From NCBI RefSeq assembly GCF_026571515.1, contig NW_026858123.1, forward strand, positions 124,001 through 188,000: a DNA stretch of 64,000 bases, read 5' to 3'. Source of the stretch: Ruditapes philippinarum (lineage: Eukaryota). The position numbers and the translations under genes are program-made. The notes under the pieces are model-generated. The model did not search any database. It saw only the letters and a program-made list of their open reading frames with translations, and was not told the DNA's origin. This document shows positions 25,343 through 64,000 of the stretch, piece after piece (the stretch's first letter is position 1; each line of letters opens with the position of its first letter).

Positions 25343-27321
25343 AATTCTGTGCAACAGTTACCCTGCTGCTCATTGTTAATCTGAAGGATTTCGTTACACA
25401 TGTATCAGAGTCCTAAAATCGAGAGATAAATTGTATCTAGTTTGGCTTGGTTTGTCCAGATTGTTCACATTCAGATTGGTTTTGCCCTCTAGTAGTAGCT
25501 ATGGCCAGTTTTATTGTGGGCCTGGCCGTCAATCGTTGTGTTATTTTTTGCAAATTTGATCAGGTGCTGTGTTAACATGTGTTAAAATTATACACAATAT
25601 GCGTTGATGAACTTTATACTGATGCTATCACTTAGCAATAATTACCTCCCCTGGTCGCCATTTATGGGTCATTACCAATTTATTATCTACAATAACTTAT
25701 CCGAAGACTGACGGAAAGGGCCGAAAAGTTGCGATTGGGTCATTTGCTTAAGATAAATATCTCACGATCTCTGCAATATTTTTCATTTTGTAAGCTCCAC
25801 TTATTCACTTTTTATTAAATATTTTACATCATGATATTTTCAAAAGAATAGAAGAACTTCATAATATTTATTTCCATGCTTCTTTTTGAAGTGATCACGT
25901 GATTGTAAAAAATGAAACACTTAGAGATGTTGCAGAACTTTTCATGTTTTACTAACCCAATATATTCCATTCGCAGTTTAGATGAAAGTGTTTAAGTTGT
26001 TCATGTATACTCATGTATACTTAATTAGCTCACGTGTTTATGTTCAAAGCAAAGTCAATCATCAATTTCAGTTAATGCGTTTGGAAGAATGCCATGAATC
26101 TAACATGAAATAGTGAAATCTATACAAATGATGTGCCATGAAGTGCGCGGCGAACCGGATTAAAGAATAAACCATATTAAAATATGACACTATCTTTGTT
26201 ATTAAAGCATGTCAGAAGTTCATATCCAGTCTATTTCCGTAAAATCTCATATATTGTCTGGTCGTTGTGGGTAAAAGATGGATAACAATAAATGTACGTG
26301 ATGAAAGATTTTTCACAGACGAATTAATACTTCGTTCTGAGAGGACATACGCAGCAATTATTATTCACTCATTAATTTGGTATAGAAATCTTTATCAAAA
26401 ATATATCAAAATGCTTCAAATTGTCCTAGGTGACTAGAGTCTCGGTTAAATAGTCCGTTGGTCAAATTGTAATGAATACATAACAGTTCCTATAAAGCAC
26501 ATTTTGTATATAAACATTAGGATACTACAGTTATAGAAAAATGGAATTCCCAAAGAACGCCCAAAACGGCAAAGTTGTTGCAGGCTCGGTTTGATTGGAA
26601 CTATTCATGCCAGGTACCATGCCCCTTAGCACCGGCTCAAGCATGGTTCATCATTTAACATGTACTGCTAAAATCTTAGATTTAGAAACAGCCGCACAAT
26701 ACTTTTAACTTTCCGGTTTGATACAAACACGGGCATATATCTAACGTAATGTAAAAGAGTTCCTATCAAATTATCTTACCTATGTTGACTGCTATTACTG
26801 TATGTCGTATTTTAACTTTTGCGCCCCGAAATAGAAAAACGCAAAACATAAAGATATGACAAAGTAACTTTTGTCGTATCCTCGTATTTTCGGAATTTTG
26901 CCTAAAAAAATGCGAAAGGACGACAAAAGAAGGGCGACTTTAAACTTTGTCGTATATTTGTATATTGTGTGGAAAAGGGAAAAATACCATATGGCGTTCA
27001 TCAGCCGCCATACTTACACGATAATGCATTACATTCCCATTAGGAAATATATTCTACACTTAAATATATTACTAGTAAATGACAAATTTCAGATATAATC
27101 GTTTCAACAAATACGACAAATGTATTGATGTTTAAATATCCACTTTTATTTAATCAAAAAGTACAATGTCATTTGTCCTTTACCTTTAAAAACGTCTTTC
27201 TATTTGAAAAACCCGGATTTTATCTCATAATTATGTAATTAAAACAAGGGAGACAAGAAAAGTAATTTTATACATTTGATTTTTACAGGATAACACAACC
27301 AAAAATGATTTTATTAATGTT

Positions 27322-41868: not shown

Positions 41869-43221
41869 TAATAGCGACCTCCTCCGCGGTGTCCTTGATA
41901 TTGACTTGCTGCCCACGCGTGCACTCTTGTTTTTCATTCACTCAGTCCGATGACCTATTTCTATATTTAGCATACGACAAAATAACCTTAACGAATTTAT
42001 CATACAGCAAACTTCCTGTTTGATAAAAAAAAAAACATTTCCGCAGCGGGGTATATAAAACTATATTTATATAAATGTCACGATTATCCAATGAAAAATG
42101 AAGTTACAAACATGCAGTATTATATGACCTTTTTTAAAGGTGTGGTTTAAGTTTGTTTATATTTGTTTTGGTTTCATAACATTGTTCGAATCACGTAGTT
42201 ATTACATCAAGTATTCCGGTAGGGTGAATGACATTTGGATTTCAGTAGCCATTAAGGGAAGTCGGCTTTGTTTTGTCAGGAAGATTCATACATTATCTCA
42301 CTTGACGGTATTTCTTTTTTTCTTTTGTAATATCATAAACAACATGCTTGATTGTGTCTGCGTATGCCTGTGCCTTATTTTGCCTTAAAATATCCTCTAA
42401 AATACAGACACAGATAGTAATCTGAATCAGTAACCGTGTTCAAAGTATATAATAATGCTTGTAATATCCTTAATTTAGTGACGATTTATTAAGTTACATT
42501 ATGATTATGAAACTTTTGTTGGTGAAATTTATCAGGCGCTACTCTGCGCGACGCCAAACGCGTTATCGCTCCGCCCACTAAGTCATGTGGTACAGAAAAA
42601 ACCAAAGCTTTGACAGTCAAACAAAATGGCTACCGCAATGAAATTACGAGAGATTCCAAGATATATTAGTGAGAAATATTTACCTTATACCGAACTTTAA
42701 GACAACGACCGAAAGCAAGAAAGTTTTATGTAGAAGCTTACATCATCAGTTTTACGATTTATAGAGAGTCAGAAAGAGCATTAGTTGTGAAATCATGTAA
42801 ATTTAGAAGTAGCGATAAAAAAGAAAAATAAAATTTGAAAATAAAACAAAATTTTGGTATATAAGTGTCCCTTTATGGATAAGAAATGCATTTCTTACAT
42901 TTTTAAAGCAGTAGATTAGACTTTATAGATTGTAGAAAGTAGTAAGTTTCAATATCATGAAAAAAAAATTCTGTCAACCTATATTCTACCTAAAATCAAT
43001 ATATTTATAAATAATCTTGATGATATGAATTGTATGTTTATATTTAGCACAATATTTATCAAAAACTGTACGTAGTTAAGCATTTCAGTGACTCAAAACA
43101 ACTTTAAGTGAATGATTAAAATAATTTTTTTTATAAAAGTTGAAATCTTGAAAATATATGTCAATTCTTGGTCATTAAACAAAAAATGAAAGAGACTGGT
43201 TTAAATTTGACCCACATATTA

Positions 43222-43633
43222 ATAGGGCTGTCATTGATAGAAAATTTTGTTTCAATATATCAAGAGACAAATATCGACGAACTATCGATATATTGACTTT
43301 GACAGATACAATGAAAACAAAATTTAATATGTGTTACAAATTTGGTAAATGGTGTTAACAGTTATGAATGACTGTAAGGACATCAAAATACTACAAACTA
43401 ACAGAAAGTTTGTTCTTTCTGTTATTTTGTCACTGACATTTGAAAACAGTGTTTAAAGTTCAAGTTAGCCAAAAATAAAAAAAAACTGGAAAAAAGTGGC
43501 TTCTCTTATTATGCAAAATAGAGAGGTATATTCACTAACAGGGATAAATGATTTATAGGTTGTATTGAAATTTGAAAGTGTGTATCAATATTTATCGAAT
43601 GATGAATATCAATAATGCGATATTCAATGACAG
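43222..43633. mobile_element. Degenerate hAT-like MITE; related sequence at about 52525-52700
   Basis: TAGGGCTGTCATTGA...TCAATGACAG. The first 150 bp or so resemble 52525-52700. Confidence 0.45.
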
Positions 43634-44319
43634 ATTTTGATATATATACATGTATATTAACATTCACAGATTATGAAATGCAAGTATTTCCTATATAATT
43701 TCTTTTTCAACTAGAACTATAACATATCTAAACTACATTAACTCAACTCCTTGAAATTAGAGAAGTTATGGTTCTTTAATTCTTTGATAAAGAGGACATG
43801 TTGATATTTACTAGCATTATAACATATAGATCTAATGAGCTGTGCAAAACACCAACCCATGTTTAAGGGTTAATTATGAGCCAGATTTAATCTATCCTAT
43901 TTTATCAAGCATGTTTTCCTGTTTATTTTAACATTATTGGGTTTGTGTTTTCTGCCTTTCAGTAACATTCTTATGTGAATATTGTTTTATTCTGTTCCAT
44001 GACTGACTAAAATGGTTTTAGAGTTTTGGTAACTAGTTTCTATAGTATGAGCTACACATATATTGGTATATATGGAAGAAATCACTGATAGTGTGTAAGT
44101 ACAATCACTCAGAACACAGGGTATAAAAGAAAAGCCTCCAGAACTTTTGTTGGCCAGCGGAGCTTTTTTTCACAGGTTTGAGAAGCATCTCTGCCCTTTA
44201 TTTTGGGGGAAAATTACACGGTTTATTTGCAAAAGGGATAAAAAACTTGATTTTAAAGAATTTTTCTTTGGGAAAGCAACCATATAACGGCCACTGCAAC
44301 AAAAAAAAAGCCCTGGCAA

Positions 44320-44485
44320 GTCCACATAGCTCAGTCAGTAAGAGCGCGAAACTTGTAATCTCGATATTGTGGGTTTGATTACTGGGCTTGGGAGACTAAA
44401 ATAAGATCTTCTAACAGTCTTTCGGATGAGATTTAAAAATGAGGCCCCATATAATCGTACATATATTAAATGAACCTTGGGGAAT
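44320..44485 (+). mobile_element. Decayed tRNA-head SINE with Deu-like domain
   Basis: TAGCTCAGTCAGTAAGAGCG head, then GTCTTTCGGATGAGA...GAGGCCCC. Confidence 0.55.
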
Positions 44486-45086
44486 CTTCTGGAATTTGGT
44501 CATCTTCCGTAACATTGCACAATATTCTCCCTTGCAAGTTACTACAGTTCCTTGGCTGTTTACTAAATTATTTATTCTTTTCTGTCTAACTTCGGTATTA
44601 CTTACTATTTTTGTTGTATTAAATTTACCAGTTGGAAGGTCATCAAAAGCATAGATCCTGAGGAGAGAATATTGAAATAGATTTTTATTTTACTGGGTTA
44701 TAGACTGGATTTGTCTAGTTTGTTCAGTTAATACATACCTTCTACAGGTATTCTGCTACAGGAATCTTCTAATCACTATGTGAAACTAATTATTACTTTC
44801 AAATTGTGTTTGTATATAAATGTTATTAAAATAACCTTTGGTAGAAATGAAAGGTAGAAAATAATATATTAAAACAGAGAAAGGATAACAGCTTGAAGTT
44901 ATCAATTTTAAACACTTGATATATACGCAGTTAGTTATATCGTAAAGTCTAATGGAAGGTTAAAAGAGGGGCAATATTTGTTACTGTAAGAGATATGCAT
45001 TTAATGTTAAGACACTCACACAACTCAATCTTTATTATATGATATAGACTACAGTTTGTATTTGAGATTTTATTAACTTTTATACT

Positions 45087-45614
45087 ATACATTATAGTTT
45101 TCTTTCTACAAGATTATGAATTCCATTCAAATACCAATGCTAATAGGATGTTATATTTATTTTTAATGGAAACTGGGAATTATTAATGTAATGAGCATAC
45201 ATGTGTATCTTAGTATATGGATATAATGTGTATTTCTGTATTTAAGGACTTACAATTATGATGGATGAGACTTGCATTTATAAATGATAATACATGTATT
45301 GATCAGTCTAAATGTTATAGGTGTTTATACCCAGTGTTAACTGGCTAATAATAGTATCTATAATAGAGTTTATACATTATAGTTTTCTTTTTACTAGATT
45401 TTGAATTCCACCCATTAGTACCAATGTTAATGTTGATGTTAGGATTTCATATTTGTTTAATAAAAATTTGGAGTTATTAATGTTATGTGCATACATATAT
45501 ATCTTAGTATTTTGATATGATGGTACTTGAAGAGTTTAAAGAGTTACAGTTTTGACATTGTTATTAAAGGGATGAGACTTTCAATAAAGTTATAAATGAT
45601 AATACATGCATTGA
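45087..45614. repeat. Old diverged direct duplication (about 285-bp period)
   Basis: tatacattatagttttcttt...tataaatgataatacatg occurs twice (about 45087 and 45371). Confidence 0.7.
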
Positions 45615-47192
45615 TTGAAAATATCCTTAAACTTGGATCAAGCAATATAATTAATGAAGTCTAAAAAAATCATATTCTGAATAGTTATTCAAATTTATTT
45701 CTATTATGTGCATAATTTGAAAAGGACAGCGTCTGTCTTATCTATTTGTAATGGAGGGACACCGGTCTCAACCTCCAGGTCTCCAGAGTCAACCAAACAA
45801 TTAACAGACCTTTCATAGAGTAGATTGTTACTTGCCCTTGAATAAATTTGTGCACTAAATTTTATAGAGGGTGATTTGGGCGACATGAAAACCAACAAAG
45901 TACAAAAAGTAACCGGGTGCCAGATGAAAACATGAAAATACAATGTACCACAAAGTGGTTCGTTTGTTGCATTTTCATCTATTCATAAATTTAATTCCCC
46001 ACTCGGAACCTCAGTTACTTTTCATGTAACGTGTCAATGACCGATATTGTAAACTCCACACCATATGAGCCAATCAGAAGTATGTTGGGTGTTTCAGATT
46101 GGTTGGATGACCAAAGACACAGAAAAACATTTCTGTAAATAATTGTGACGCTCCAGTATTACGCTAACCGCCGTTTCATCAGCATTGTTGATGGCATGCC
46201 AAAAGATATTTTTTAATTTATATCAGTTACAGAGCAGGCATATATAAATATAAAATAAGTCAAATATGTATTGACCCATAATTGCGACTATACGCATGAA
46301 GTGAACCATCTTAATATTATGCAAGGACGTCTCTTGATGTGGAAAATTAATATGCAAAATTTCTTTAATCTTTTTCAAAAGTTTATCGCTAACTTTCTTA
46401 CAGCGTCATAACAAATTCAAACACGCTTTACATTACCCTCCTATTAATGCATGATGGTATAAAAAGGGAATGATTGCAGTGTACATGACGTAAATAAATC
46501 CAAATAAGCATGGCTTTCCCACCATATCTACGTATTTTCAAAACATTTCGTATGCAATGTCTTTTATCTCGTTCTATATGGAAACTATGTCATTCAAGAT
46601 CGTCTCGTGAAAATGTGTCTTTTTCGGATAATAATGTTTTGTTACAGAATATGATACACAATAGAATAAGTTATAGATTGCTTTATGAAAGTGATGCGCA
46701 AATTATGTTGCTAATTTTGATATTATGCACATATGGATCTTTTCAGCACATATGGAGCTCAAATGCAATTTCAAGCAGCGATTCCCTTCGTTTTGTAGCC
46801 AAATCTCAATAAATGTTTAAATCAGGATAAATCAGTCTGTAGTGAGATTTCGTTTTCGAAATCTCTGGTTTTTTTAAGTCTGTTTAATGACATTTTTTTT
46901 TATTCACATTGCATGTTTTCGATACACCAGAACCCACGACGGAAAGAATATCTCGATGAAAACTGCATAGAAATCCAAAACAAAAATAGGTAATATAGAG
47001 GAGAGTCAGGAGGGTAGAATCACATTTCGATTTTCTTAAAAAAATGATTGAATTTTATTTAAATGTTTAAAAAGATGAAAACTTACCCTGAGATTGACCT
47101 ATTTTTACAGTCACATCTGGTGTTACGCTTCACATCTAGTGCAGCCGAAATTCACATATAATTTTTACCAATGCTCATTTTTGAGATACATA

Positions 47193-47510
47193 TGGGGTTC
47201 CACCCCGTGTTTTAGGTCCTCTTTTATGTCAAATATAACGTCAATGTCATGTCTGCAGCCCTAAGCAATAAGTTTTTATAATATGCTAATGACTCAGGTA
47301 TTCTTGTATCTGGTAAAATAAATCTGAAGAAATTCTCTCGTATGGCATGAGTCTTATAAGATTGGTTAATTGACTTAAAATTGTCTTTGCATCTTGGCAA
47401 GGCAGAGTCTATTCTTTTTAGTTTATGTTTCAACTTAAACTGGACCACATGTTATGGTACTGCTATAAAATACACATCTTTTGTTAAGAATTTAGGTGCA
47501 AAACTTGATC
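47193..47510 (+). mobile_element. CR1/L2-type reverse transcriptase fragment
   Basis: Decayed GVP..LGPLL, YANDSGILVSG (YADD box) and WLIDLKLSLHLGKAESILF. Confidence 0.75.
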
Positions 47511-47556
47511 AATTTTTTTTGGCGTCGCCTTTGATGCTGTGCATCAATGCTTTTCT

Positions 47557-50500
47557 TGTATCTACATTTACGTAATACATTTTTGTACTCAGATCTGGTT
47601 TTTTCTGTTTACTCTATTAAAATCATTCTGACACTCACGATATTTGTTTAAACATTTATGAAATATCTGCTGCTTTTCAAAACACTTACTATTAAACCAT
47701 GGTTGATTTACATCATTATTTCACACTTAGAGTCAGTGGCTACAACCCTTTTGATAAATGGAGAAGCAATATTATTAAATATGTTTTCTAAATTTTGCAA
47801 ACAATAATCAAGGTCGCCCTTTGTAGAGCTTGATAAAATATTACTTTCTAAATTATCAAGATTCTCAATATTTTCTTCAGTTGATATTAACTCAATATAT
47901 TAATCCTTCAAATTTTCTTTCCATACATAGGTATAATTAACACTATCATTATTCTGATTTAAATCCTTATAGTCATATTTACTGTCAACATAATCAGTAG
48001 ATTTATTAAACACAAAGGAAACAGTTATAAGACAGTGATCAGACACAATATTAAGACAATCAATATAATAGGTAGCAATTTTTCTCATAAACTATTTTTA
48101 CACAATAAATAGTCAACAACACTACACCCTCGATCTATTATTCACAAATGTGTATTTACCAATAATATAATCTTTATCTTCCGTCCATTCATTATTCTAT
48201 ATAACCCGTTTGTTTACAAAAATCTAAAAGCAGCCTGCCATTATTATTCATATGTTATCATCTATCGTGGATGTCTACTTCTATTGTCTGGTATTACATA
48301 ACACAGACCAATATAAATGTCTTTATCTATTAAAAGTTTATTGCCCGAAATTTCTATCCATAATATATCATCTTGTGATGTAAAAAATATATATCATCAG
48401 AATCAAAATTTGATTTCACAAAAATAATAATGCCACCTGAATTCCGTTTTGCTGTATTTTTAAAAGATGTTCTATGTAAAACAAAATACTAATACTCAAA
48501 ACCGTCGACATGAATCTGTCAACGTCTCTGTAAAAAGAACAATGTCATAACTTTCAAACACATTTTCCAGGGCTGGGAATCAAAACTGCGTCGTATCCTA
48601 CAAAATGTAAACAAATGCCGCCATCTTGGAACGAAAAATGTATGTTTTTGTTTATAACTCTTTTTGTTGGAAATGACTGAAACCAGATATATTTATTAAC
48701 ACGCTACACTATTTTCCGCTTCGTTCGGTATATGTTGCTTGCACAACTATTTTGTAAAACAAAAGTTATAGCGAACTTGCAACTCGAAGCGGGGCAGATT
48801 TTTATGAAAATGTTTGGATACGACGCAGTTCATATTGCTTTATCTATCGTTTTTTTCCTTCAAATCAATTATATACTCGTTTTCAGAGTTCACCTTAAAC
48901 TTCAAAACATAATTTTGCATCATTTACTAAAATTTCATTAAAGAGAGATGTTTATTTTCCAAGAAAATAATGATTTTTACGAAATGATACGACGCAGTTG
49001 AAAATAAAATATGATACGACGCAGTTGTATTTTCATTGCAGGCTGCATATTGGTTAAAATATCTAAATTATGTGCTAGGTATGCTAATAACGTCCAACAC
49101 CATTTCTTGTTTACAACTTAAGTCAAAGGCAGAGGTCACTCATTAGTTCCATAAAAATGGAAATGAAATTCAATTCTATTATTTAGGCTGTATTTTTCGG
49201 TCGCATTTTAGTACCTATCATAAGCATCTACAAATTCCGAAAAGCTATATCAAATGCAATATACATTGAACGTGATCGCACACCCATATGACAACGTGTT
49301 CCATTTTTGCCTTAGCATGCTTCTTAAATTGTTCCTGTGAGTTCGAAATGGGAGTGATTACTATTTTTGATACAAAATTCAATATTCCAGTGTAACCTCT
49401 CCTGGACCCTGTATTAATCAGGAATGACCTTTTTTTTTTAAAAAAAAAGAGAAAGAATTACAATTTTTGAAAAGGTCTCTTGCAATCGGAAGAGAGCTAT
49501 GCGCAAATTGCATGCCTACCATTGTTACTTGTAATTAGCAATAATTTCCGTCAATTCCGTTATTACTTATGTCTTTTTCGTGCCGATTTTATTGTATTCA
49601 TTTTCTTAATAATCGGTGAGAACAGACGAGCTTTATTATTCGAAACTGAACATTAAATTTTTAAAATTATATTGTAAATGGTTAAGCTACAATATATTTT
49701 TGCATGTAGGTTATGCGTTCCGTTCAGTCATTTTATGTTCAGCGCCGCGGAACTTTACCGCTGTTTTTGTCGTATTGCATTTCTTTATCGCCGATGAGGA
49801 AAGGTCTACGGAATATATTTTCTATATTTGCACTTAAGTATCATTCTTCTCCATTAAAAAAACTGTAAATTTTCAAAATCGAGTTACATATGATACAACT
49901 ACAAATAATTTTGTAAAGAAGGTGTCCGTTTTGCAAATGTATTTTACGCTGTGCACCGATAAATTTGATACAGATGTAGACAGTCATTATCTTTCAACAG
50001 TATTGAAAAAGTTTTCACAATATTGAACAGAAAATTAAGGTCAGATTATCGCATCGAATTTTCAACAGACTAAAGACATTGCATCTTAAGATACCTTCAT
50101 ACTAAAGTGTGATTTTTATTTGATAATGAATTGCCTAAAAACTTAAACAAAAGTTTTCAGAAAATGACTTCACAGAGGATTACCCCCTGTTTACATTGAA
50201 AATTTCTCTGCTAGTCATACCGAAATAAGAAATTTAAATGTTATTCTCATGATAATTAACTCAAATATTTATAATCTTAAAACTTCACACCAGAAATTAA
50301 TTAAAATGCTGCTTATTTGTACAGCTGACATTAACAAATTTTGTTGAAAGTTTGAAAACAAACCACAAAAAGCAGTCATTACCCAGAACATGCAGAACCC
50401 CAGTTAACTTAAAGCGTAGCTAGCCAACATGAATTCAAGTTAATAGATTTCTACTTTTTTGCGAAAAAAATTAGGAATAATATTGAACATGCAGGAAAAT

Positions 50501-51882
50501 ATAGGAATTATTTCAGATATTATGATCAATTAGGTAACATGTTCATGTTTAACTGAAAAGTAGCTTCCACAATGTAAACTTTCAAATTAAATGTTATATT
50601 TGATATGACACAATGTATTCTTAATAATCAAATACAGCAGAACATTGCTATACACCGCAAATGATCTGGGGTTTTTATCTAGCGCAAGTGATTATTCCAT
50701 AAAATAGAAATATATTGCCAAAATTATCCCTGTTGAAAAGACTGCCAAAAATACAACTGCGTCGTATCACATTTTATTTTCAACTGCGTCGTATCATTTC
50801 GTAAAAATCATTATTTTCTTAGAAAATAACATCTCTTTTTAATGAAAGTTTAGTAAATGGTGCAAAATTATGTTTCGAAGTTTTTGGTGAACCCTGAAAC
50901 AAATATATAATTGATTTGAAGGAAAAAACGATAGATAAAGCAATATGAACTGCGTCGTATCCACACATTTTCATAAAAATTCTGCCCCGCTTCGAGTTGC
51001 AAGTTCGCTATAACTTTTGTTTTACAAAATAGTTGTGCAAGCTATATATACAGAACGAAGCGGAAAATAGAGTAGCGTGTTAATACATATATCTGGTTTT
51101 CAGTTATTTCCAACAAAAAAAGTTATAAACAAAAACATACATTTTTCGTACCAAGATGGCGGCGTTTGTTTACATTTTGTAGGATACGACGCAGTTTTGA
51201 TTCCCAGCCCTGTTTTCACAAAATCTTAATTCAGTTTGCAAACCATTTATATTTATATACGCACATCTAATTTAGCGACCTCCTCCGCGGTGTCCTAGAT
51301 ATTGACTTCCTGCCCACGCGTGCACTCACTCAGTCAGATGACCTATTTCTATTTTTAGCATACGGCAAAATAACCTTAACAAATTATCATACAGCAAACT
51401 TCAAGTTTGAAAAAAAAAACATTTTCGCAGCAGGGATATATGAAATCATATTTATATAAAGGTCACGATTATCCAATGAAAAATGAAGTTACAAACGTGC
51501 AGTATTACATAACATATTTTAAATGTGTGGTTTAAGTTTGTTTATATCTGTTTTGGTTTCACAACATTGTTCGAATCACGTAGTTATTACATCAAGTATT
51601 CCGGTAAGGTGAATGTCTATAGAAACATTTGGATTTCAGTAGCCATTAAGGGAAGTAGGCTTTGTTTTGTCAGGAGGATTCACACTTTATCTCACTTTAC
51701 GGTATTTCTTTTTTTCTTTTGTAATATCATTAACAACATGCTTGCTTGTTTCTTCGTATGCTTGAGCCTTATTTTGCCTTAAAATATCCTCTAAAATACA
51801 GACACAGATAGTAATCTGAATCAATAACCGTGTTCAAAGTATTAAATAATGCTTATTATCTCCTTAATTTAGTGACGATTTA
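47557..51882. repeat. Diverged paralog of the 40250-42490 segment, split by a 2.65-kb TIR element
   Basis: Colinear similarity on both sides of the insertion, e.g. ORFs 42140 vs 51525 and 40728 vs 47900. Confidence 0.85.
48568..51212. mobile_element. Non-autonomous DNA transposon with about 465-bp TIRs and 5-bp TSD (TTTTC)
   Basis: CAGGGCTGGGAATCAAAACTGCGTCGTATCC...GGATACGACGCAGTTTTGATTCCCAGCCCTG. TTTTC at 48563-48567 and 51213-51217. The empty site is visible at about 37612-37630 and 41557-41575. Confidence 0.92.
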
Positions 51883-52002
51883 TTTTTATATGTTTCTACA
51901 CGATCATTTTAGTGTTTTACTTATTCAACCTTTTTTAACCATGACAATTGTTAGAATTTCACTTGGCGGGGATTCATTTTATTTACACTGTCTCGTTTAT
52001 AG

Positions 52003-52490
52003 GAACATGGTGGGGCTAAGAGCGAGGTTTGGTGTACCATTAACCGGTTAAAACTCCCCAGCAGTCATTATTATGCTGCTGACTGTTCCAAGGCGGCGCC
52101 CCTCTGTGTTCCTCAGATGTATGTCTATGTTGTTTCATACTGCTTTGGTGACACGTTTGCTTGTGTCCCTTGTTGTTTTCTCGTCTACGGTAAGTATCTT
52201 CCCCATTACCCCTAGTTTTTATTTCTTTTGATTACCCCCCCCCCTTCCCCCAGTCTCCTGTCCCCTTCCCCTTTGTCTGTGTGGGCCAATAGTCAATCAT
52301 TTATTTGTTTTCTTTGAATTCTTATCAGTTACAAATTATTTATCATTTAGTGATTAACCTGTCCGTGCTCTGTCTTTGCCCTGTCCTGTTTTTGTTTGGG
52401 GTCCGCCTGGGCTCCTTGCCACTAGTTCTTGTTGCTGGGTCATATGGGGGTTGCGTTCATTGAACGCCGCCTTTCCTTGTTGATCTTGTT
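52003..52490 (+). repeat. Unclassified interspersed repeat; its 3' half is related to inserts at about 36424-36665 and 40371-40610
   Basis: Shared 'acggtaagtat', C-rich tract and 'tgaacg..gccttt.ccttgttgatctt'. Confidence 0.5.
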
Positions 52491-52840
52491 TATCATATTT
52501 TACAAATTAGCATAAAGCCTTGTGCAGGGTGGTCATTGATGGAAAATTTTGTATCGATATATCGAGAGACAAATATCGACACTACATTGATATATCTACT
52601 TTGACCGTAGATACAATGAAAAACATTTATATATGTGTTATAAATTGGGATCATGGTGATATGCATGCTTGTATTACACATTGCGAATACTACAAATTGA
52701 TTGATTATTTTTTAATGTCAAACACTACATGTAGTTAATTAACCATCTGGGAAAAATCATGGTAAAAAGTCAAAACCATAAATGAATAAAATAAATTTTC
52801 TATCCCACTGATATGTGTAAAAGTAGTCAGTGAAATGTCA

Positions 52841-53568
52841 CCTTGCATGTACGCATTTACAACTTTATGTGTCTGACCAAAACGTTCCTTGAGTAAATGT
52901 ATAGCTTCTGAATAGTTTCCATGTGTAACATTCAAACCATCAATGACACTGGTAGCATCGTCGAACAATAGAGTTTTCAGATAGCAAAATTTCTGCACCT
53001 CAGATAGTGACATGTTGTTATGTATACTTGATTCGTAACAGTCCCAGAATGTTTGCCACTCCAAAATGTCTCCAGTAAAATTTGGCAATGTAAGCTTCGG
53101 AAGTTTATGAAACTGTGATGCAGACTGAAGTGAAATGTCACTTACGTTATTAGCCGATGTGCTATGATTTCGGTTCCCGGAAGTTCCTTCGGCATTACTG
53201 TGCATGGGTTGTGCGGTCTCATGGTTGTTACTATTTAGGGGCTCCTCAAGTGTGGTATTCTCAAGGGTAATTTGTGGGGAACGGGTGATTTCACAGCAGC
53301 GCGGTGTTGAGCCTCCAAATCTCCAATGCGTAGCCGAACTTCCAGCATATAGTCCTCAGTCTCTAGCATCTCAGTCTTCATGTCTACCTCATCTACCTGC
53401 GACATTATCTCCTCGTTGATCTCTTCCAGCGCCATAAGTTTATTACGTAGAGTAAAGAACGGTAGTAAAGTGCGTATAATCGCCGGCATATTCTTCTAAT
53501 TTGCCAAGTTGACGTGTTATCACAGCCTTATGTACACTTCTTCTCTTCTTAATTCTCAAAATATCCAT
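52841..53568 (-). pseudogene. Second, truncated BEL/Pao gag
   Basis: ATG at 53568 just after the PBS. 52841-53140 is nearly identical to about 58296-58600. Confidence 0.88.
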
Positions 53569-53596
53569 AATTTCTGTTTTTGTCACGGCACCAAAA

Positions 53597-53758
53597 TGTA
53601 AAAGTGGTCAGTGAAATGAGAAGCAACTACTAAAATGATAGTGTTTATTAACGATAAAATAACAATGCAACGGAAATGACGTCGTATGAACTCTTCTTCC
53701 CGCCAACGTAACGTTGTCTGCTTGCCGTTCCCGCTAACGTAACGTCGTCTTTACGACA
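53597..53758 (-). repeat. BEL/Pao LTR (162 bp), central
   Basis: TGTAAAAG...TTTACGACA, flanked by a PPT on one side and a tRNA-His-type PBS on the other. Confidence 0.92.
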
Positions 53759-53792
53759 TCCTCCCAGGCGCAAAATATGGTAACTGTTACAT

Positions 53793-56700
53793 AGTCTCAA
53801 GGGGGTACAGCTTTACAATTGGTCTTGATGTAGTGTGCCCGTTACTGGTGCGAACCATGGCCGCTCGTGTCAATCCATCTTTACCAGTGATCAATTGTTC
53901 AATAGTTCCTAATTTCCACTGTGATTTCGGGGTTTCATCACGAATAATTACTACATCAACGACCTTAATCGTTTGGCTATTGTTCCGTTGTTTTGTGATA
54001 CTGGCGTAATGACGTCAAGTACTCGTGACGCCATCTATCCCGGAAATGACTAATGATCTTTGCCTGTATTCTCGCTTGTTTGGTGATCCCATCTCTTGAA
54101 ACTGGTTTTGGTTCGGATATATCTTCATTGTAAGGCAGGGTTGTCAAACGCCGTCCGTATAGCAAATGAGCTGGTGTAATTGGTTCTGGGTTGGTTGACT
54201 CTGACGTAACGTAAGTCAATGGACGGTCGTTCATGACGCTTTCTACCTCTGTTACGATTGTTTGGAGAGTATCATAAGTGACGTATGCACTACCAAGAAC
54301 CTTTTTGATAGCTGTTTTGGTAAGACCGATTAATCTTTCCCACCAACCACCAAACCAGGGAGCGCGCTAGGGAATAAATCCCCACTCTGTACCATGGTTG
54401 TGTAACGTGTCTTTTACGGAAGTAGAATTCATTAATTTGCTGCTGCTTGAAAAGTTGTTCCGTTATCAGATATCATAACCTTTGGTAGAGATTTTCTGCT
54501 ACTGAATCGCCGACACGCTTGTAAAAATGAAGATTCAGTCATATCTGAGACTACTTCTAGATGAACAGCTCAGGTCGAAGCACAAGTAAAAAGACAAATG
54601 TATGCCTTCTCACTTTTGTTTTTTCCTCGTACATGTAAAGCTCCAGTGAAATCAACTCCAATCACAGTAAAAGGTTGTGTATCTTGAACTCGTATTTTGG
54701 CAAAGGTGGTGGATCTGGCGCTGTTTACGGTCTTCCTGACACTCGGCGGCACTGGTTACACTTCCGAAGTAATTTCTGAATACCACTGGCGTATCGATGG
54801 AATCCAATATTTCTGGCGTATTTGGGTAATAAGTGCACTCGTACCTGCGTGTAAGTGTCTTTCATGGGCGTCTATAATTACAAGTTTCGTCAGTTGGTGG
54901 TTTGCCGGAAGCAGATATGGGAATCGGGTTTGCTCAGCAATAGGGGCGTTATGAATCCTACCACCACAGCGAATGAAGCCATTATTGTCAAGGTATAATT
55001 GTAGTTGCCTAACAAGCGTTTGGTTTTCCTTCCCTTTTATACATTAAACTAGCGCTATATTTTTTTGGGAAAAATTTAAAACCCTACTTCTCTGCCTTTG
55101 CAATTTTTTTTACGTTACGTAAAAAATTACTATTATTTAAATTTTCCCCCAGATCGGGAATGGGTTTAATGAATCTCTATATAGCTCCCCAAGAAGCTTT
55201 GGAACGGGTAAATTTTGATATCCCAAAGAAAATTGTGAACCCCAGGTTTTCATGGGAAAAAGTTATCTCTTGTTCTTCGGAGTAAAACATTTTTACAAAG
55301 CTTTTTGGTTTTCCCGGGACCGACTTCATCAGTTTTTAAACCCAATTTAGACCTTTCTCCCATAATCTTTTCTTTTAGAAAATTTAAATAGCTTTCATTT
55401 TCCCCCTTTTAACCCTGTTTAGCCGGTTTGCTCGGTTTCTGACAAAAATCCACCTTTTTTTTTCTTTAAAATTTATTTTTTCCCGTCACTTATTCGTTCA
55501 AAGGTTTCAAAATTCCGGTTTGGGTGCAGGCCCTAAGAAAAATTTTACGTCAGACCACATTTACGGAAAGCTTTTTTGGGATCGTCTGGGAAAGGGTGCA
55601 AAGTCTTGAAATAACCTTCACCCCTAAGTTCAACCTATAATGTCCCGAGGCTTCAAAAAATGCGAACGTTTCCCTGACATAAAACCGCAGATGGTCAACT
55701 TTAATGTTTTACGATCCATTTGGGCCAAAAGGGCGGACCAAAAAAATGAAAATGAAAATCTAGATGCCCCTGCAGCACTGTTTTTCCTTTACCGGGGGTT
55801 TTAAAAGCAAAAAGCAGTTTCCTTGAATTTTTCTTCTCGGGTATCTGGGTTTGGATTATAAGTTTAAAGGGTTTTTGCAAAGTTATACCATTGGTTTTTT
55901 TAAGGTTCCCTATCTGGTAGGGACGTGTCCCACTCGAACTTTTGCTTCCAAATATCTTGAAGTAGGATTTTTGCACGAACTGTGAGTGGGGTCAGGAAGC
56001 CAAGGGGTCATAAATCTTCGCTGTTTCCTTGAGTATGACACGTTTTGTCATAAATTGGGAAGTAGAAATGGTCTTCTGTGCTAAGAAAATCTGGTCTGAT
56101 ATCGGGTCCCATTTCATTCCAAGGATGTTAGTTATTTATCAGTTTCGGCTACTTCTTCCGCTTCCGCTAGGCTGCGCAGGGAACTGTTGTTAGAGCTCCA
56201 AGACCGTAAGTTAAAACCAGCAGATGTCATCAATTTACGTGTGTTCTGGAAGTAGTCAAGTAGAGTACTCTCGTCAGAAAAACTGGACATCCCGTTATCA
56301 ACATATAAGTCTTTCTTAAGTATTGCACTCACCCAATTATGATCATTGGCACTCAGATGCTTGGTTAAAGTGGCATGAAGTATAAATGGTGAACATGTGG
56401 CACCAAAAAGCACGGACTTGAAACTGTATGTTGTAAGGTAACTATTTGGATCATAAATGTCGTTCAACCATAGAAATCGTGTGACGTCACGATCATTCTC
56501 GTTGCGTTGTATTTAAAGAAAAGCCTTCTCAATATCTGTGCAGACGGCATATCTGTGCTTTCTAAAGTTCACTAAAATACTTGTCAATTCGTTGATCTCA
56601 GGAGGGGTTGATTCAAGGCAATCATTAAGACTCGGTGAATTTTTGTTTTGACGACAACTACAGTCAAACACAATACGGATAGGGGTTGTGGCCGAATGTT

Positions 56701-59010
56701 TCTTAACTCCGTGATGTGGGATAAAGTGCACGGGACGCTCACTTGGTAAAACATTCACTTTCTCTATAAATCCTCTCTTTTCCTGGTCTTTAATTATGCC
56801 GTCGTACTTTTGTAGTAAAGGGGGGTCTTCACGTAGTCGTCGTATGGTGTTCTGAGTTCTTCTTAATGTGATGTTATAGTTGTCGGGTAAATTAGGGTGA
56901 TCAGGTTTCCATGGCAACGAAGCAGTATACTGGTCATTTTCAAAGATCATGCAGTTCTTCTGATAATTATGCAAGTAGTCAGAAGCCTTTTCTTCTGCTG
57001 CGGGTAAAATGCCGATGGATTCCAATTTCCAGAATCGCTCAAGATCATCACAATCTGGTGCAGATGTAATAATATTCATAATGTAGCTCGTAGCTTTACT
57101 TGATGACGTCACCGGAAGTTGCCCGGAAAGAAGAAAACCAATCTTTGACTGGACAGCTGTCGGTCCGTCGCCCCGTATAATATGGTCTCCAATGAATTCC
57201 CAATATCTATCCGCTCCAATTAGTAATGAAATGTTGAATGTGTCAACTTCCGGTACTGGGTGGGCTAGTTTCAAACCTCGTAAATATGGCAAATTTTTGG
57301 CATCTCGTATTTGGTTACGTAAAGGTACAGCAATAGACGGCACAATTAGGACATCAATGGCTATTTTCTCTGAGTTCTCAGTTATCAGGTAAACTGTGGC
57401 GGTTTCAAAATGGCCGACTTTCATGGACTCCGCCCCGAATGCAGCCAGATGGACAACTTCAGACCCGCGTCTCTGTAATTGTAGTGTTTTGGCGAGTTCA
57501 TGAGAAATAAATGAACGCTGCGCTCCTTCGTCAAAAGCACAGGCGTGACCGAAAGTAACCTCAGCATCAGCAGTCTTCAGTAATACGTTGTTTCTACTTT
57601 GTGTTGCAGAATGTAGAATAGCCGATTATGCACTGGAACCGGAAGTAAGATGCGTTGTTGCTTCACTACCGGAAGTAGGGACGAAACTTGGAGCCGATGT
57701 GTTTAGTGAGCTTCCGATACTCTGATCGCAAATGCTTGTATGGTGTTTCCGGTTGCATTTTCTACAACGGTATTTTGAGCGACAGGAAGCAACACTATGC
57801 TTGCCTCAACAGTTGAAACACAGATTCGTGCAATGAATTATGGCTTTTCTCTCCTTAGGATTTATGATGTTTTTACAGTCATTAGCAAAATGTTTGTCAC
57901 TGCAGAATGGACATTGGGGGCGTTGTGGTATTTGTACTTCTTGTATATCTTGAAAACATTTCTTCTTTTGTGTTGGTCTTGTGCTGGTAAGGAAAGATGC
58001 AGTTGCCAAATGTTCATATGTAGTCTATTTTGGCTAGCCTGAATCTATTATATTTATTTCCTTCTTTAACGCTCTCCTTAGTTCCGGAAGTCGCCATTCA
58101 CTCCCGCCATGGTCGCGTGTCATGATTCGCTTGATCACCGCCGGAAGTTTTTCAAGTATGACCGGTATAAGTAAATTTCCAAAGGACTCATGACCTTGAC
58201 CTAGGGACTGTAGACCACGGATATATGCCTCCATCTTTTCTTGAAACGGTCTTAGACTGGACAGTTGGGAAGTTGGTCTAGGTAAATCCAGCAAACCTTG
58301 CATGTACGCATTTACAACTTTATGTGTCTGACCAAAACGTTCCTTGAGTAAATGTATAGCTTCTGAATAGTTTCCATGTGTAACATTCAAACCATCAATG
58401 ACACTGGCAGCTTCGTCGAACAATAGAGTTTTCAGATAGCAAAATTTCTGCACCTCAGATAGTGACATGTTGTTATGTATACTTGATTCGTAACAGTTCC
58501 AGAATGTTTGCCACTCCAAAATGTCTCCAGTAAAATTTGGCAATGTAAGCTTCGGAAGTTTATGAAACTGTGATGCAGACTGAATTGAAATGTCACTTAC
58601 GTTTTAAAATTTGCCATTGCTATTATTTTGGTTCCCAGAAGGGGTGGGGGTTTTATGGGTTTTTACATTTTGGGGGTCCTCAAGGGGGTTTTTTTTTCAA
58701 GATAAAATTTTTGGGGAAGGGGATCTCAACCAGGGGCCCCTGTTGAGCCTAAATCTTTCCAAAAGGGGTATCCGAATTTTCCCCAATAGTCCTCGTCCCG
58801 AGTTTTCGGTCACATGTCTACCCATCTACCCCGCACCAAATCTCCTCGTTGTCTCTTTCCCGCGCCATAAATTTTTTAAAGTACAGTTTCAAAACGGTAA
58901 ATAAAGGGGCGTATTATCCCCGGGAATTTTTTCTTTAAATTTTCCCAAGTTGTTTGTGTTAAACACAGCCTTTTTTAACTTTTTTCTCTTCTTAATTTTT
59001 CAAAATACCA
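53793..59010 (-). pseudogene. BEL/Pao gag-pol, disrupted
   Basis: DUF1759-type gag (FTGDILEWQTFW), CCHC knuckles (CPFCSDKH, CFNC, CRKCNRKHHTSIC), protease (FDEGAQRSFI), RT (PIRIVFD, DIEKAFL, FGATCSPF, YVDN), integrase (GVDFTG, SDNGTTF, PWFGGWWERLIG) and C-terminal RPIVKLYPLE. Confidence 0.92.
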
Positions 59011-59041
59011 TAATTTCTTTTTTTTCACCGGGACCAAAAAA

Positions 59042-59216
59042 TTTAAAAGTGGTCAGTGAAATGAGAAGCAACTACTTTGCGTTGTGTCTAAAATTTTAAT
59101 GTTTATTATTGGTAAAATAACAATGCAACGGAAATGACGTCGTATAAACTCTTCTTCCCGCCAACGTAACGTTGTCTGCTTGCCGTTCCCGCTAACGTAA
59201 CGTCGTCTTTACGACA
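59042..59216 (-). repeat. BEL/Pao 5' LTR
   Basis: Matches 53597-53758 apart from a short internal indel. Confidence 0.9.
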
Positions 59217-59249
59217 ATAGGTAATGCAAGATAAGTTCAAATTATACAC

Positions 59250-62200
59250 CTACTTCTGTCACGTTTTGTAATGAGATCTTTGTTCTTGAGATCCTTCAAT
59301 AGCTCATATGTGTATCACCATTAAATTTTACATTGAACCAAGATGGATAGCCTGGTACCTGAAATATGTAGATGAAACGTTAAATTAACATGAATGGTTT
59401 TTATATATATGAATGTTTATGAAATGCTATAAATTAATAAAAATAATAAAAAGAATGGATATTAAAATTTAACTTAAAATTAATTAAATGAGTCTAGAAA
59501 AAAACCCATATAGGTAAAATTATCATTTTTATTTCAATATTTTAATCTATGACTGTTATATTTCCAGTTATTATCTATGACTTTAAATAATTGTATTTCC
59601 ATCTCAATTTTCATTATGCATTACAATTATGATATTATTCATAAATGATTCTCTAATGGATAACTATGCAATATATCAAAACAATGATGTGCAAAGTAAG
59701 TGAACATATGTATATTAGTGTGATGTCTTTTTATCATAAACATGTTGCATTCATTAATAATGCCACTTCCAATTATCAGTTCATCATAGTCTATCATAAA
59801 ACTTGTTAGTATTTTTGAAGTTTTTTCAAACATCATCATCAATGATGTATTATGTTGTGAGTTTCTTCCAATCACCTGTGCTTTGTGAATTGTCATTTGG
59901 TTTGTTTTCCATGATACCATTGAAACTGTGATTTTAAGGTCATTTATGTCCCTTTTCTATAAAAGAATTAATCTGTGACTGTATTCCATAAGATGTTGGG
60001 TGTGTAATTTAATGCCTTTTTTTCTTCTAAATATGTACCTTTGAAATAACATGTCCTTCAAACCACTCCACTGTGACTGACCATCATCTAGCATGAAGTT
60101 CATGGAAATGTTTCTTCCAACAAGCACTATTTTATCACTGTCATTTGATGGCAATGTTAAAGCACGGTGGATCAGTGCTTTCACATTCGCAAGCAATTGT
60201 GATACAATAAGTGGTTTGCTTTTTCCATTCACTTTTTTGACAATTTATATGCATCTTTATTTCCATTGAGTGTTTGATGTAAAACATTTTGACGAAAATG
60301 TAGCTGAGCTTTCAGTGCCTTCTTCTTATCATTCTCGTTTCTACACAAACAAAAGTTATTGTCTGCCTGTAAGTCTAATTGCCACAATCCCCATTCTATT
60401 ATGTCTTCTGTGTGTTTTTCCAATTTTCTCTCTGAGCAATCTGTCTATATGTCCAAACAATGATTCTGAATATTTGTTGTGCATAGGTACAGCTTTTGTA
60501 CCAGCCTGTATTTCTGATAAACAGCTTGCCCATTTTCCATCTCCAATGTAGTCAGTAAAAATGTTAACCATTAAATTTAAAATTGCAGGCAACATTGATC
60601 GTAGTATTAATGCCACATCACTATTATATTTTGACTGACTAAAATGACATCAGATTTACTTCTATGAATATTTTCATGGTGACGTTATTAATTAATGTAT
60701 CAACCCTAATGCCTTGACACCAGAAAGAAAAAAATCAATATTAACATCATGTTTAACAGAAAGAAGTAATCTGTTTGAGGGTATTCTTTAAAAAATTTTC
60801 TTGCATAAAATACACATAACTTGCATTTTCAAAGAGAATATTGAATCTATTTCCATGATACCGTTGTATGGGCACCCATTTCATTTTGTTTTCTTGCTGA
60901 AAGTGATAAAATGTCCATAAACACCACTCTTGGCATCCCCACCACAAGAAAAAGCTTTACTGGCAGTGCGAATTAATCTCACTGTTCCAGATTCATGTAA
61001 TCTAAAAGCTGAATTATATATTGGCACTTCTTTATCAAAATGACCAGTTTCAATGATTTTTAAACTTTCGCTCGCTGTTTCTGCAATATGTACAAGAGCA
61101 TGGAGTCGACAAAAAATTATTTACTGCTGTTAAAGATTTTTGCTCTCTATCATTTAATAAATCCCAATTTTCTCCCATTTGGTTTTTCAAAATATCTGTC
61201 CTATACGATTGTAAAATGTCATTAAAATTTAACTTGTGTTGCTGCTCTGTCAGACATAGTAAAATTTATATATTTAAAGTAATTGATTTCCTTTTCTCAT
61301 CATCACAATTGTGTCCGATTGTTTCAATATCATTAAGAATATTATCTTATGCTCCCATAGTGTCCTGTCCTGACTTTGTAACAATTTGTCTTAATCCTTA
61401 TGTAAAATATTGCTTGTTTTCCGTTCTTACATGAAAACCTTTTCCCCAAATTTAGACATTTCGTCTGATAACAGACACAAATTTTCCTCATGTGTGTCCT
61501 CAGTACCTCTGCCAAATGTTTTTTGAGGTGATAAGCCTTTCAATATTCATGTTATTAACTGTTGAAACTGAAGGAAGACGATCTGGTTTTATGTTTACTA
61601 ATTTTAAAACTCGAGAAATCACACGAGAAATATTGCTGCTAGTAACATTCATACTTAAAAGGTCAAATACACACTCTTTTGTTTCAGTTTTAAAACAATT
61701 TCTGGAATTGTTAATCATGTTTAAAGTCTTTTCATCATTGTTATTTTCTAAATGTTCGCAATATGATTGGAGGTTATTGTTTTTTTTCTTTAATTCACTA
61801 TTTATTGTTAGTTTTCTCTAATTCACTAATTTCCTTTCTCATAATTTTAATACTTTCCTTTAAATTTTCATATTTTTAAGTCCATTCTTTTGTCTTTGTA
61901 TATATGTCTTTGCGGATCTTAATTGTTTTACTAATCTATTTTTTTCCAATACTTGATTTGAAAGGTATCTTATTCTTTTCTTTTTTTTAATTTTTTCTAT
62001 CACTTTTTGTGCCATTCTCGATTTTGTATTAAGTCTGCTTTTAACATTTTCTTTAAGGTTATGGTTTTCTTTTTGTAAATCAGCATTTTCCTTACAACAT
62101 TTACCAAAATCTTTTGAAAGCCCAATAATGACATTATTGGCAATTTCAAAGTCTTCCGTCTTCAATTTATTTAATTTTTCACAGCATAGAAATGTTTGTT

Positions 62201-62440
62201 TTTAGATTTTTGCAAGTTCTTGTATTGGTTTATTATCTTCACTATTTTCTTTTTTAAACTAAATTTAGTTACATGCTGTTTTGATTTTTCCATTAGTCAT
62301 TTCAAACAAAAGTCTTTCCATCTTTTTTCAAAATTTTTTTATCAGGTCACCAACAGTAATATCCATTTTATTTACCTTTTAATTTTGCTACAAGTAACTC
62401 TCTAACTACTACTGTCACTGTTGCTTTGATATATTTCCTG
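59250..62440 (-). pseudogene. Decayed DDE (hAT-like signature) transposase with N-terminal coiled coil and C-terminal Spin/Ssty Tudor-like domain
   Basis: Motifs in order across frameshifts: coiled coil (61860-62165), LPSVSTV, CLLSDEMSKFG, MSDRAATQVKF, CRLH, GTVRLIRTASKAF, GNRFNILF, PMHNKYSESLFG, ALKAQLHFR. Then LVGRNISMNF..EWFEGHVISK | intron | VPGYPSWFNVKFNGD..TYELLKDLKNKDL. Confidence 0.7.
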
Positions 62441-64000
62441 AAATTTAAAATTTATTTCAACATGCACCATATTTTCAATATTAAATCTAGTGCTAGACAG
62501 TTTTGCCAAGTAATCTTAAAATGCATCAATGAATATATGTTTGGACAAGTGTAATAAAATATGAACCTTGAAGCAGCACCCGTCCAGTTTCATGCTTATT
62601 TTCATGAAAATGTATTTAAAAGTACCAAAAGAATGCAATTTACACATTATCAATGGCACTTACAACCCATGTAAGCTACCAAAAAGAGGTCAAAATATAA
62701 AAAAATCCCCTGACTGCATAATTGACGCAGTAAAAATATAGTAAGACACACCATCTTAATGAGCTACACATGTAAGTCATTTCAAAATCAATCATTGCCT
62801 GTATTAATTATAATAGGGAAATTAAAGCAGACAGATAAAATGCTTTTGTGCCAAACAAACAAGAAACATTCAATTGATTTTCAATAAAGAGGTTATATTT
62901 GTAGTTAAATTAAAATGGCAGAACCCAAATAAAAATGGCTTGGAAATTTGACTGATAGGTATAGAAATATATATATATATATCTAATTTTTAATTGTTTT
63001 TTTTTAATTGTTTTGCATTTTATTTCCTTTCATTTTTATTTTCATCGTCCATTTGTGGTTTGAGGGCACCCCCCTTCCAGGTATAAAGTTGTGACAGGTC
63101 ATTTTCAAGTAATGGGAAGATAAACAATATTAGATAATAGGCAATTAAATATGGCGGACAGTGGTTGCGTTTTTTTCAAATCTGTTGAAGTAAAATTGGA
63201 GAGTTTAGGCTAAATTGTACTCAAAGTGTTTAAAAACGGTTTGTTAGGAATATATTGGAATTTTATAGTGACCTGAAAGGCTTATGAATTAAATATTGTG
63301 TGAAAATGGAGTTAACTTCAGTTGTTTTAGTACTCGTACATAACAATTTTGAAATACTGAGCGAGCGGGAAAGTATGACTAACTAGCTTGGGTTCCAACG
63401 CCTGATGAATCCCAGGCTTTCTCTAACATGTATTTTGAGGGGAAAAAGGGAATTTCAATGCAGCAAAATTGACAGTTCTTTGTTATTTACCCTGAGGCCC
63501 TCTTATCAAAAAGAGAGTGGTATAATGAAAACAGTCCCTCTCAGAGAATACCAATACACAGCATGACTTGAGATTTTCCTCTTCAATAAAAGTATTCTCT
63601 TTATACACAGGATTTTAATATTGAAATCATGAATAAAGTTATCAAATTTATCTATTTTATGAATAATATTTAATTATTTATATCTTTACATCATGACACT
63701 GTTGAATACTAAATTATCACAGTATATTGTTTTAAAATAAATTTATTTATATTCTCTTTTAATATTGAACATGAGGAATTGTGTCTAAGTTATATATTTT
63801 AAAAATAATATTTTAGCTTAAATACAAACCTTTCCTTAATTTGTTTGAGCTTATGAAAAAAATGTTTATATTGATACAAACTAAATTAATTGGGCCAGGA
63901 TTCTCACAATTATTTTCCCATTTGTACACAAGAAAATTGAAATACATGGCCATTGAAAAAAAAAACGTTTAAAACACTTATTTAATCATCCATTGTGGAG

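Follow-up and report, generated by a model that had tools for sequence, protein, structure and literature searches.

Can a cut-and-paste DNA transposon carry its own reader of methylated histones? The question is raised by a stretch of the Ruditapes philippinarum genome (contig NW_026858123.1, positions 124,001 to 188,000, or C6610:124001-188000 in our numbering), whose 64,000 nucleotides, taken whole, we call the window; the assembly is AT-rich and 1.4 Gb in size. An original prediction, made from the letters of the window alone, described at 59250-62440 on the minus strand a transposase remnant apparently fused to an intron-split Spindlin-type (Spin/Ssty) Tudor reader domain. We found that this region is probably part of a dead, fragmented copy of an autonomous cut-and-paste DNA transposon of the hAT superfamily, and the family to which it belongs is very probably of hAT type with a Spin/Ssty unit built into its protein. 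The peptides quoted in the prediction all lie on the minus strand where it had placed them, as do the GT donor at 60038-60037 and the AG acceptor at 59360-59359.

In intact family members the protein is about 950-1080 amino acids (aa) long and has five parts, namely an N-terminal helical part with a coiled coil of about 200 aa, an RNase-H-like DDE core with a large all-helical insertion domain and a CxxH motif, a second coiled coil, a conserved helical linker (GLWQ...ALKxQLxFRKxVL), and a single C-terminal Spin/Ssty Tudor-like unit. Pfam, sequence matches to solved Spindlins and the fold all support the identification of the tail as one Spin/Ssty unit, and the evidence comes from exon pieces, from naturally uninterrupted frames and from stored public proteins. 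The exon 2 piece of the window matches the Pfam family Spin-Ssty (PF02513) over profile positions 24-43 with an E-value of 8e-4 and 19.6 bits, which is below the 25-bit cut-off, and the undeleted exon 2 of the paralogues L025 and L026 scores 28.2 bits, which is above it. Five of 10 long public relatives pass the cut-off over profile positions 1-50 (47.9, 47.9, 44.0, 33.6 and 29.3 bits); three match below it and two have no match. The two without a match read through the donor, and so does one of the three weaker ones, P0010. The Pfam model found 14 matches in the genome at E<=0.01, every one of which adjoins this transposase family by coordinates, and four of the 14 are uninterrupted and cover profile positions 1-42 to 1-50. 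At the locus L057 the unit reads ...LLVGKRIEHQFQDETYIGRVISVVPGYPDWYNVVYDNDVAVYTYKLLDDYRNKDL... in a single open frame of 451 aa (35.1 bits), and uninterrupted frames of this type indicate that the two halves form one domain without any splicing assumption. When the family profile was compared with the PDB, it matched 17 distinct sequences of Spindlin-1/2/3/4 (E 9e-21 to 1e-16), aligning with each of the three repeats and best with repeat 2. The C-terminal 267 residues of P0080, a public relative, were modelled from a 19-row alignment; the model has a predicted local distance difference test score (pLDDT) of 85.5, and its final 60 residues form a small barrel. Foldseek ranked Spindlin-1/2B/3/4 structures at all of places 1-47 for this model (best E 4.8e-5), with several superpositions at a root-mean-square deviation of 1.1-1.3 A over 62-63 columns and 28-33% identity. 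The domain named by the original prediction is thus borne out by profile, sequence and structure searches.

The unit can be compared in more detail with Spindlin1 and the other Spin/Ssty proteins, which are vertebrate methyl-histone readers. It belongs to the same Pfam family, has the same fold and is 24-33% identical to the solved chains. The cage of Spindlin1 repeat 2 that holds trimethylated lysine 4 of histone H3 (H3K4me3) consists of F141, W151, Y170 and Y177, and alanine changes in the cage lower affinity by 80- to >800-fold (PMC3967050). The four aromatic positions are kept in the transposon unit: the family columns that correspond to them in the HMMER alignment are aromatic in 17/19, 18/19, 19/19 and 19/19 sequences. 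In the window subfamily these positions are occupied by F, F, F and Y. Unlike Spindlin1, the transposon protein does not have three tandem packed Spin/Ssty repeats; its unit is single, is attached to a transposase and is a predicted reader. One unit per protein means that the family shares the domain with the Spindlins and is not a Spindlin orthologue.

The reader unit and the transposase could in principle have met by accident, with exon 2 belonging to another gene and the apparent fusion arising from chance neighbourhood or from a gene-model artefact. No RNA read joins the two exons, and the public models P0011, P0002 and P0010 read through the donor instead of splicing, as this explanation would have it. 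Against it, each half taken alone is just half of a Tudor unit, and all 50 profile positions are matched by the two combined; the split falls at the same residue in diverged paralogues. Several family frames were read, and those that reach the end share a common plan, stopping at ...LVGK.I.H.F...W..G.VISQ before a GT, and after a short intron the paralogues resume with VPGFP.WFN..Y..D.AVY.Y.L..D...GDL. Regular expressions applied to the plus strand of each locus found the exon 1 motif in 9/30 loci and the exon 2 motif in 7/30. The intron lies at the same phase-0 point (VIS[QK] | VPG) in paralogues at about 40% identity, as expected from the phase assigned in the prediction, and it splits the reader unit in most copies of this genome. 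Four intronless copies read straight through in one frame, the whole unit is present in 19/152 stored relatives, and exon 2 lies inside the element ends, falling within the terminal repeats of the sister subfamily described below. An accidental pairing of the two parts is therefore scarcely credible and close to refuted, and the fusion proposed in the prediction is supported by intact homologues, which keep the domain, and by the four uninterrupted members of this genome.

The core of the protein most resembles that of the hAT transposases. Five residues, D377, D448, C494, H497 and E774 in the numbering of P0061, are invariant in an alignment of 39 full-length members. All five are kept in the window copy, where they occur on the minus strand in the order and at the places given by the prediction: the D of LLSDE at 61465-61463, the D of MSDRAA at 61251-61249, the C and H of FCRLHALVH at 61111-61100 and, after a GNRFN motif at 60854-60840, the E of YSESLF at 60466-60464. 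For an intact paralogue, the 510-aa core (L041:694-2223) was modelled with AlphaFold2 from a 50-row alignment, and the model reached a pLDDT of 94.6 and a predicted template modelling score of 0.90. It opens with three strands, which are followed by two further strands, each preceded by a helix, and then by a long helical domain and a final helix, with D85 on strand 1, D157 after strand 4, C203/H206 after strand 5 and E472 on a late helix. The model of this paralogue accordingly has the architecture of Hermes, an RNase-H-like DDE core into which a large helical domain is inserted, and the top 10 Foldseek matches are all Hermes (E 3e-7). With Hermes, Ac, hobo and Tol2 the family shares this core and insertion, a CxxH after the second D, an E on a late helix, short terminal inverted repeats (TIRs) starting TAG, and, in the sister subfamily, a target duplication of 7 bp that may reach 8 bp. 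It differs from them in having no detected Pfam hAT family or BED finger, two long coiled coils, a non-coding 5' region of about 4.5 kb in the sister subfamily, an element length of about 8.75 kb, and a protein that ends in a domain of the histone-reader type. Kolobok structures were absent from the PDB matches listed, and we know of no Kolobok structure solved so far; with none to compare, fold alone cannot separate the family from Kolobok, and it is the termini that do so. A Kolobok identity was ruled out because the target duplications are 7-8 bp and not TTAA; Pfam showed no nuclease domain in the family.

The termini were obtained from a sister subfamily (the L032 type), which has about 40% protein identity to the window subfamily and whose copies are 96-98% identical on different contigs. 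Walking outwards, we took as the ends of the element the base at which three copies diverge together. The 5' end, TAGCGAGATCAGAGC..., is common to C2971, C8050 and C3208, and the 3' end, ...GTGTTGACCTCGCTA, is found in five copies with five unrelated flanks. The element begins TAGCGAGATCA... and closes ...TGACCTCGCTA, and its inverted repeat, TAGCGAGATCA versus TAGCGAGGTCA, pairs at 10/11 positions, as fits the short TIRs of hAT elements, whose consensus starts (T/C)A(A/G)NG. Exact 7-bp direct duplications (GTTAATA, GTATAGG and TTCTAAG) flank 3/3 complete copies, and counting the first T of the terminus lengthens the duplication to 8 bp in 2/3 of them. The copy on C2971 spans 163948-172700, about 8.75 kb, and the roughly 4.5 kb between its 5' terminal repeat and the first coding exon (L069:949 to L062:3001, C2971:163948-168500) contains no open reading frame >91 aa. 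A short nested repeat lies within this 5' region, at L062:497-652. In the window subfamily four copies are alike up to ...ATCGCTA and then continue into four different flanks; the last five bases, CGCTA, match the sister subfamily. Upstream, homology within the window subfamily runs at least 3 kb beyond the ATG, and an insert resembling a long interspersed nuclear element interrupts C2680. The positions L032:80, L061:834 and L027:2251 were taken as 5' ends and then rejected, each being the break point of a single copy, and the apparent TIR at L061:834 (TAGTGAGG) was dropped for the same reason. The TIRs and the 7-8-bp duplications in 3/3 sister copies indicate that the family is mobile.

Several observations weigh against a hAT transposon with a built-in reader. 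No Pfam transposase family was found in the window (10 stop-free pieces), in 4 long paralogue frames (E<=1) or in 10 full-length relatives (E<=0.1); for the transposase part of the window pieces and paralogue frames, Pfam returned only coiled-coil noise. The core and the family profile matched no solved transposase by sequence among the PDB chains, and Pfam showed neither a BED zinc finger nor the hAT C-terminal dimerisation domain; no DNA-binding domain was recognised. Only 7 bp of the target duplication are free of ambiguity, the eighth base being ambiguous. In the window subfamily the 3' end was found, and the upstream walk did not find the 5' terminus, and hence the target-site duplication (TSD). 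On the side of the reader, Spindlin uses three packed repeats versus one here, and 2/19 sequences lack the first cage aromatic. As for expression, four runs were aligned to the intact paralogue L041, two of them raw RNA; the latter (4% and 6% of reads examined) gave a depth of 0-0.2 over it, no splice joint at its intron was seen in the runs examined (4-6% of raw RNA reads), and one contig, from a run of uncertain type, spans the intron unspliced. A BED finger or a Pfam hAT match is usual but not universal in hAT elements, and the family is a distant hAT branch. In the absence of a Pfam or PDB sequence match, the assignment to hAT rests on fold, motif order, termini and target duplication. The near-zero RNA depth over L041 is not evidence of silence, since only 4-6% of two raw runs was read. 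Just downstream of this intact copy lies an abundant repeat, L041:3693-4260 (C7113), with an RNA depth of up to ~1860 per strand in run X22.

The size and state of the family bear on whether it is a transposon at all or a set of domesticated, immobile host chromatin genes derived from a transposase, with the window copy as a duplication pseudogene. A DNA search of the genome gave about 6 close copies of the window element at 75-92% identity, and a six-frame search with the 443-aa frame of L026 returned at least 97 matches, which are 23-100% identical to it. Twelve of these sit in stop-free frames of 700-1149 aa, and long open frames persist at 25-47% identity, as domestication would predict; the close copies of the window subfamily also share long flanks whose ends were not found, and public records bear such names as "uncharacterized", "hypothetical" and "SPIN3-like protein, partial". 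Many copies, however, carry stops and deletions. The catalytic D, D and E do not vary, the copies of the window subfamily continue past their common 3' end into four different flanks, and the sister subfamily has sharp common ends, TIRs, 7-8-bp duplications in 3/3 copies and unrelated flanks. We therefore regard domestication as very improbable and retain the reading of a mobile hAT-type family. The original prediction had named three outcomes that would count against it, namely no profile match for the joined peptide, intact homologues ending before the domain, and homologues that are single-copy host genes without TIRs or TSDs; what we found is a profile match, homologues that keep the domain, and a multi-copy family with TIRs and target duplications in a sister subfamily. 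Two family members form an inverted pair on C12392 (18133-19410, minus strand, and 25735-27012, plus strand), and two others form a tandem pair on C15086 (55321-56364 and 58442-59479), in each case a few kb apart.

Relatives are also common in public data. An exhaustive HMMER search of 1.84 billion protein cluster representatives gave 1788 relatives at E<=1e-3, of which 178 reach E<=1e-30, and the full-length ones measure 900-1100 aa. Four of 10 relatives checked have public names ("SPIN3-like protein, partial", "uncharacterized protein" and, twice, "hypothetical protein"), and the other six are unnamed. Among named relatives, the closest come from Mya, Littorina and Patella. In a protein atlas the only clusters returned were named "hypothetical protein" or "tag-278" and came from Mollusca and Porifera, and a homologue search with P0007 gave only 3 proteins. 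The mollusc proteins of about 1000 aa that appear in public gene sets as "SPIN3-like" or "uncharacterized" would be explained as transposase genes, and the spread of the lineage across many molluscs and beyond (1788 public clusters) offers ready material for tests of a transposase redirected through its reader.

What could a transposase gain from such a unit? We tentatively favour target-site choice as its role, at somewhat short of even chances. In a plausible model derived from sequence, the transposase would cut and join DNA as Hermes does, with 8-bp staggered target joining, while the reader unit would tether the transposase oligomer to nucleosomes carrying a methylated histone tail, and this docking would bias where the element inserts. 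Our best guess for the mark is one like H3K4me3, from the best match to Spindlin repeat 2. The coiled coils could gather several single reader units and so compensate for having one unit where Spindlin has three. Chromovirus integrases carry chromodomains, and the integrase of the human immunodeficiency virus (HIV) is tethered by the host protein LEDGF/p75. These systems are reminiscent of the one proposed here in that the enzyme that joins the element to its target works together with a histone-methylation reader, which biases integration, targeting being a proposal in our case. They differ in that they are retroelement integrases with a chromodomain or a host adaptor, whereas ours is a cut-and-paste transposase with a built-in Tudor-type unit. 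The usual view is that cut-and-paste transposases pick their targets by DNA sequence or accessibility; if our reading is true, a hAT lineage with a methyl-histone reader would be a direct case of DNA transposition guided by a chromatin mark, paralleling the chromodomain integrases of retroelements. A literature search found no description of a transposon-encoded Spindlin-type domain; Repbase-type libraries lay outside that search and could list the family under a hAT name.

The unit might instead serve counter-defence or the capture of a host factor, by competing with a Spindlin-type silencing reader of the host for the marked chromatin of young transposon copies or by binding a methylated non-histone protein; it might also exploit host silencing. 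A recent preprint reports that mouse SPIN1 binds and represses young transposons marked by H3K4me3 and trimethylated lysine 9 of histone H3 (H3K9me3) and cooperates with the germline PIWI-interacting RNA pathway (bioRxiv 10.64898/2026.08.20.746118). The likeness of the transposon unit to the H3K4me3-binding repeat 2, and the adjacency of 14/14 genome matches to the transposase family, would suit such a role. On the other hand, the Pfam-model search showed no separate three-repeat Spindlin gene in the genome at E<=0.01, so there may be nothing to compete with, and a single unit lacks the surfaces of Tudor 1 and 3 to which SPINDOC is reported to bind (bioRxiv 10.64898/2026.08.20.746118). We consider counter-defence unlikely and keep target-site choice as the working proposal. 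The finding also raises the question of where the Spindlin domain came from. With all genome matches adjoining the transposase and no separate three-repeat Spindlin gene seen at E<=0.01, it is conceivable, if quite improbable, that invertebrate Spin/Ssty domains are mainly transposon-borne and steer insertion to methyl-marked nucleosomes, and that the vertebrate Spindlins, which silence young transposons, descend from them.

The copy in the window is larger than the region first described. DNA comparison with paralogues shows that it spans about 63130 down to 42810 on the minus strand and is split by two nested insertions, so that 59250-62440 stands as part of the element and not as its extent. 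Its pieces are as follows.

62893-63130, minus strand: 5' non-coding remnant, 77% identical to the region upstream of the paralogue C2680 (L025+L072) and 73% to L029.
62367-62892, minus strand: 5' region adjoining the start codon on its upstream side, with 87% identity to L025 and L027.
60039-62366, minus strand: exon 1 remnant, broken by stops, frameshifts and deletions of 78, 134 and 243 bp.
59359-60038, minus strand: phase-0 GT..AG intron splitting the Spin/Ssty unit, with GT at 60038-60037 and AG at 59360-59359.
59259-59358, minus strand: exon 2 remnant with the second half of the Spin/Ssty unit and the stop codon, from the PF02513 match and the paralogue alignment.
59217-59258, minus strand: first part of the 3' untranslated region, up to the point where a nested insertion breaks it; homology to L025/L027/L030 stops at 59217 and resumes at 52817.
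52818-59216, unstranded: nested BEL/Pao-like retroelement sequence interrupting the transposon, with L025 match pieces on both sides and DUF1759.
52697-52817, minus strand: 3' non-coding region, continued, 92-93% identical to L025, L026, L027 and L030.
43225-52696, unstranded: second block between transposon pieces, bounded by two matching pieces.
42810-43224, minus strand: 3' terminal region, 87-89% identical to L025, L026 and L030.

The copy is truncated upstream of about 63130, and no homology beyond that point was found in window positions 63131-64000 or in C6610:188001-190000. Its 3' terminus, at 42810 on the minus strand, reads ...TTATCGCTA. Positions 62892 and 59217 were first taken as element ends and were rejected because other copies continue past both; L025:3002-3123 matches window 52697-52817, and L025:3117-4298 matches window 59217-60429. 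Exon 1 runs from the N-terminal helical and coiled-coil part through the hAT-type DDE core, the second coiled coil and the GLWQ/FRQ linker to the opening half of the Spin/Ssty unit, LVGRNISMNF...HVISK, and its start ATG, at 62366-62364 on the minus strand, was placed by alignment with MDISNTVGDL of L025. It ends, again on the minus strand, with LVGRNISMNFMLDDG and then, in a different frame, (S)VTVEWFEGHVISK; AAG at 60041-60039, directly before the GT, is its last codon. Exon 2 begins at 59358 with VPGYPSWFNVKFNGD and, after a frame change, reads TYELLKDLKNKDL. The intron itself is about 88% conserved among close copies.

The damage was read from a comparison with the paralogues L025 (C2680), L026 (C12074) and L027 (C14248), which are 86-92% identical to the window copy. 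Three stretches that are coding in the uninterrupted 443-aa frame of L026 are missing from the window: 78 bp near 62175, 134 bp near 60675 and 243 bp near 60427. The original prediction had taken the frame change in exon 1 for a 1-nt shift and that in exon 2 for a small deletion. The first is in fact a duplication of 5 bp that arose in the window copy; DDGQSQWFEGHVISK stands in a single frame in the paralogues, and "VTVE" is therefore not ancestral. The second is indeed a deletion, of 10 bp, where the paralogues read NGDRAVYTYELLKDLKNKDLIIKP and then a stop. Paralogue comparison gives the ancestral tail as ...LVGRNISMNFLLDDGQSQWFEGHVISK, the intron, and then VPGYPSWFNVKFNGDRAVYTYELLKDLKNKDLIIKP followed by a stop. 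With three coding deletions, the 5-bp duplication, the 10-bp deletion, stops, two nested insertions and a truncated 5' end, the window copy is dead.

Other repeats lie in and around these elements. The BEL/Pao-like block of 6.4 kb contains gag-like DUF1759 frames at 58037-58603 and 52738-53355 (124.1 and 85.8 bits), a weak DUF1758 match at 56516-57625 and a direct repeat of about 0.9 kb (52840-53758 and 58295-59216, 82% identical); it is bounded by TGT...ACA and flanked by ATATG at one end and ATAGG at the other. In the 9.5-kb block at 43225-52696 the two arms of an inverted repeat (48568-49033 and 51212-50748) are 94% identical, and a 134-bp direct repeat occupies both edges. At L061:342-792 (C2713:19141-19591) there is a repeat of about 440 bp that resembles a miniature inverted-repeat transposable element and has internal inverted symmetry; it has at least 40 copies at 92-94% identity and 4201 first-look candidates in the genome. 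Finally, the coding region of the paralogue on C2680 carries a 2.1-kb insertion (L025:4760-6906) made of repeated units of about 300 bp, each with the same 46-aa frame, RLMVGIQYNYIQWSSTLRGSAVHKNHNSILTNYRV....

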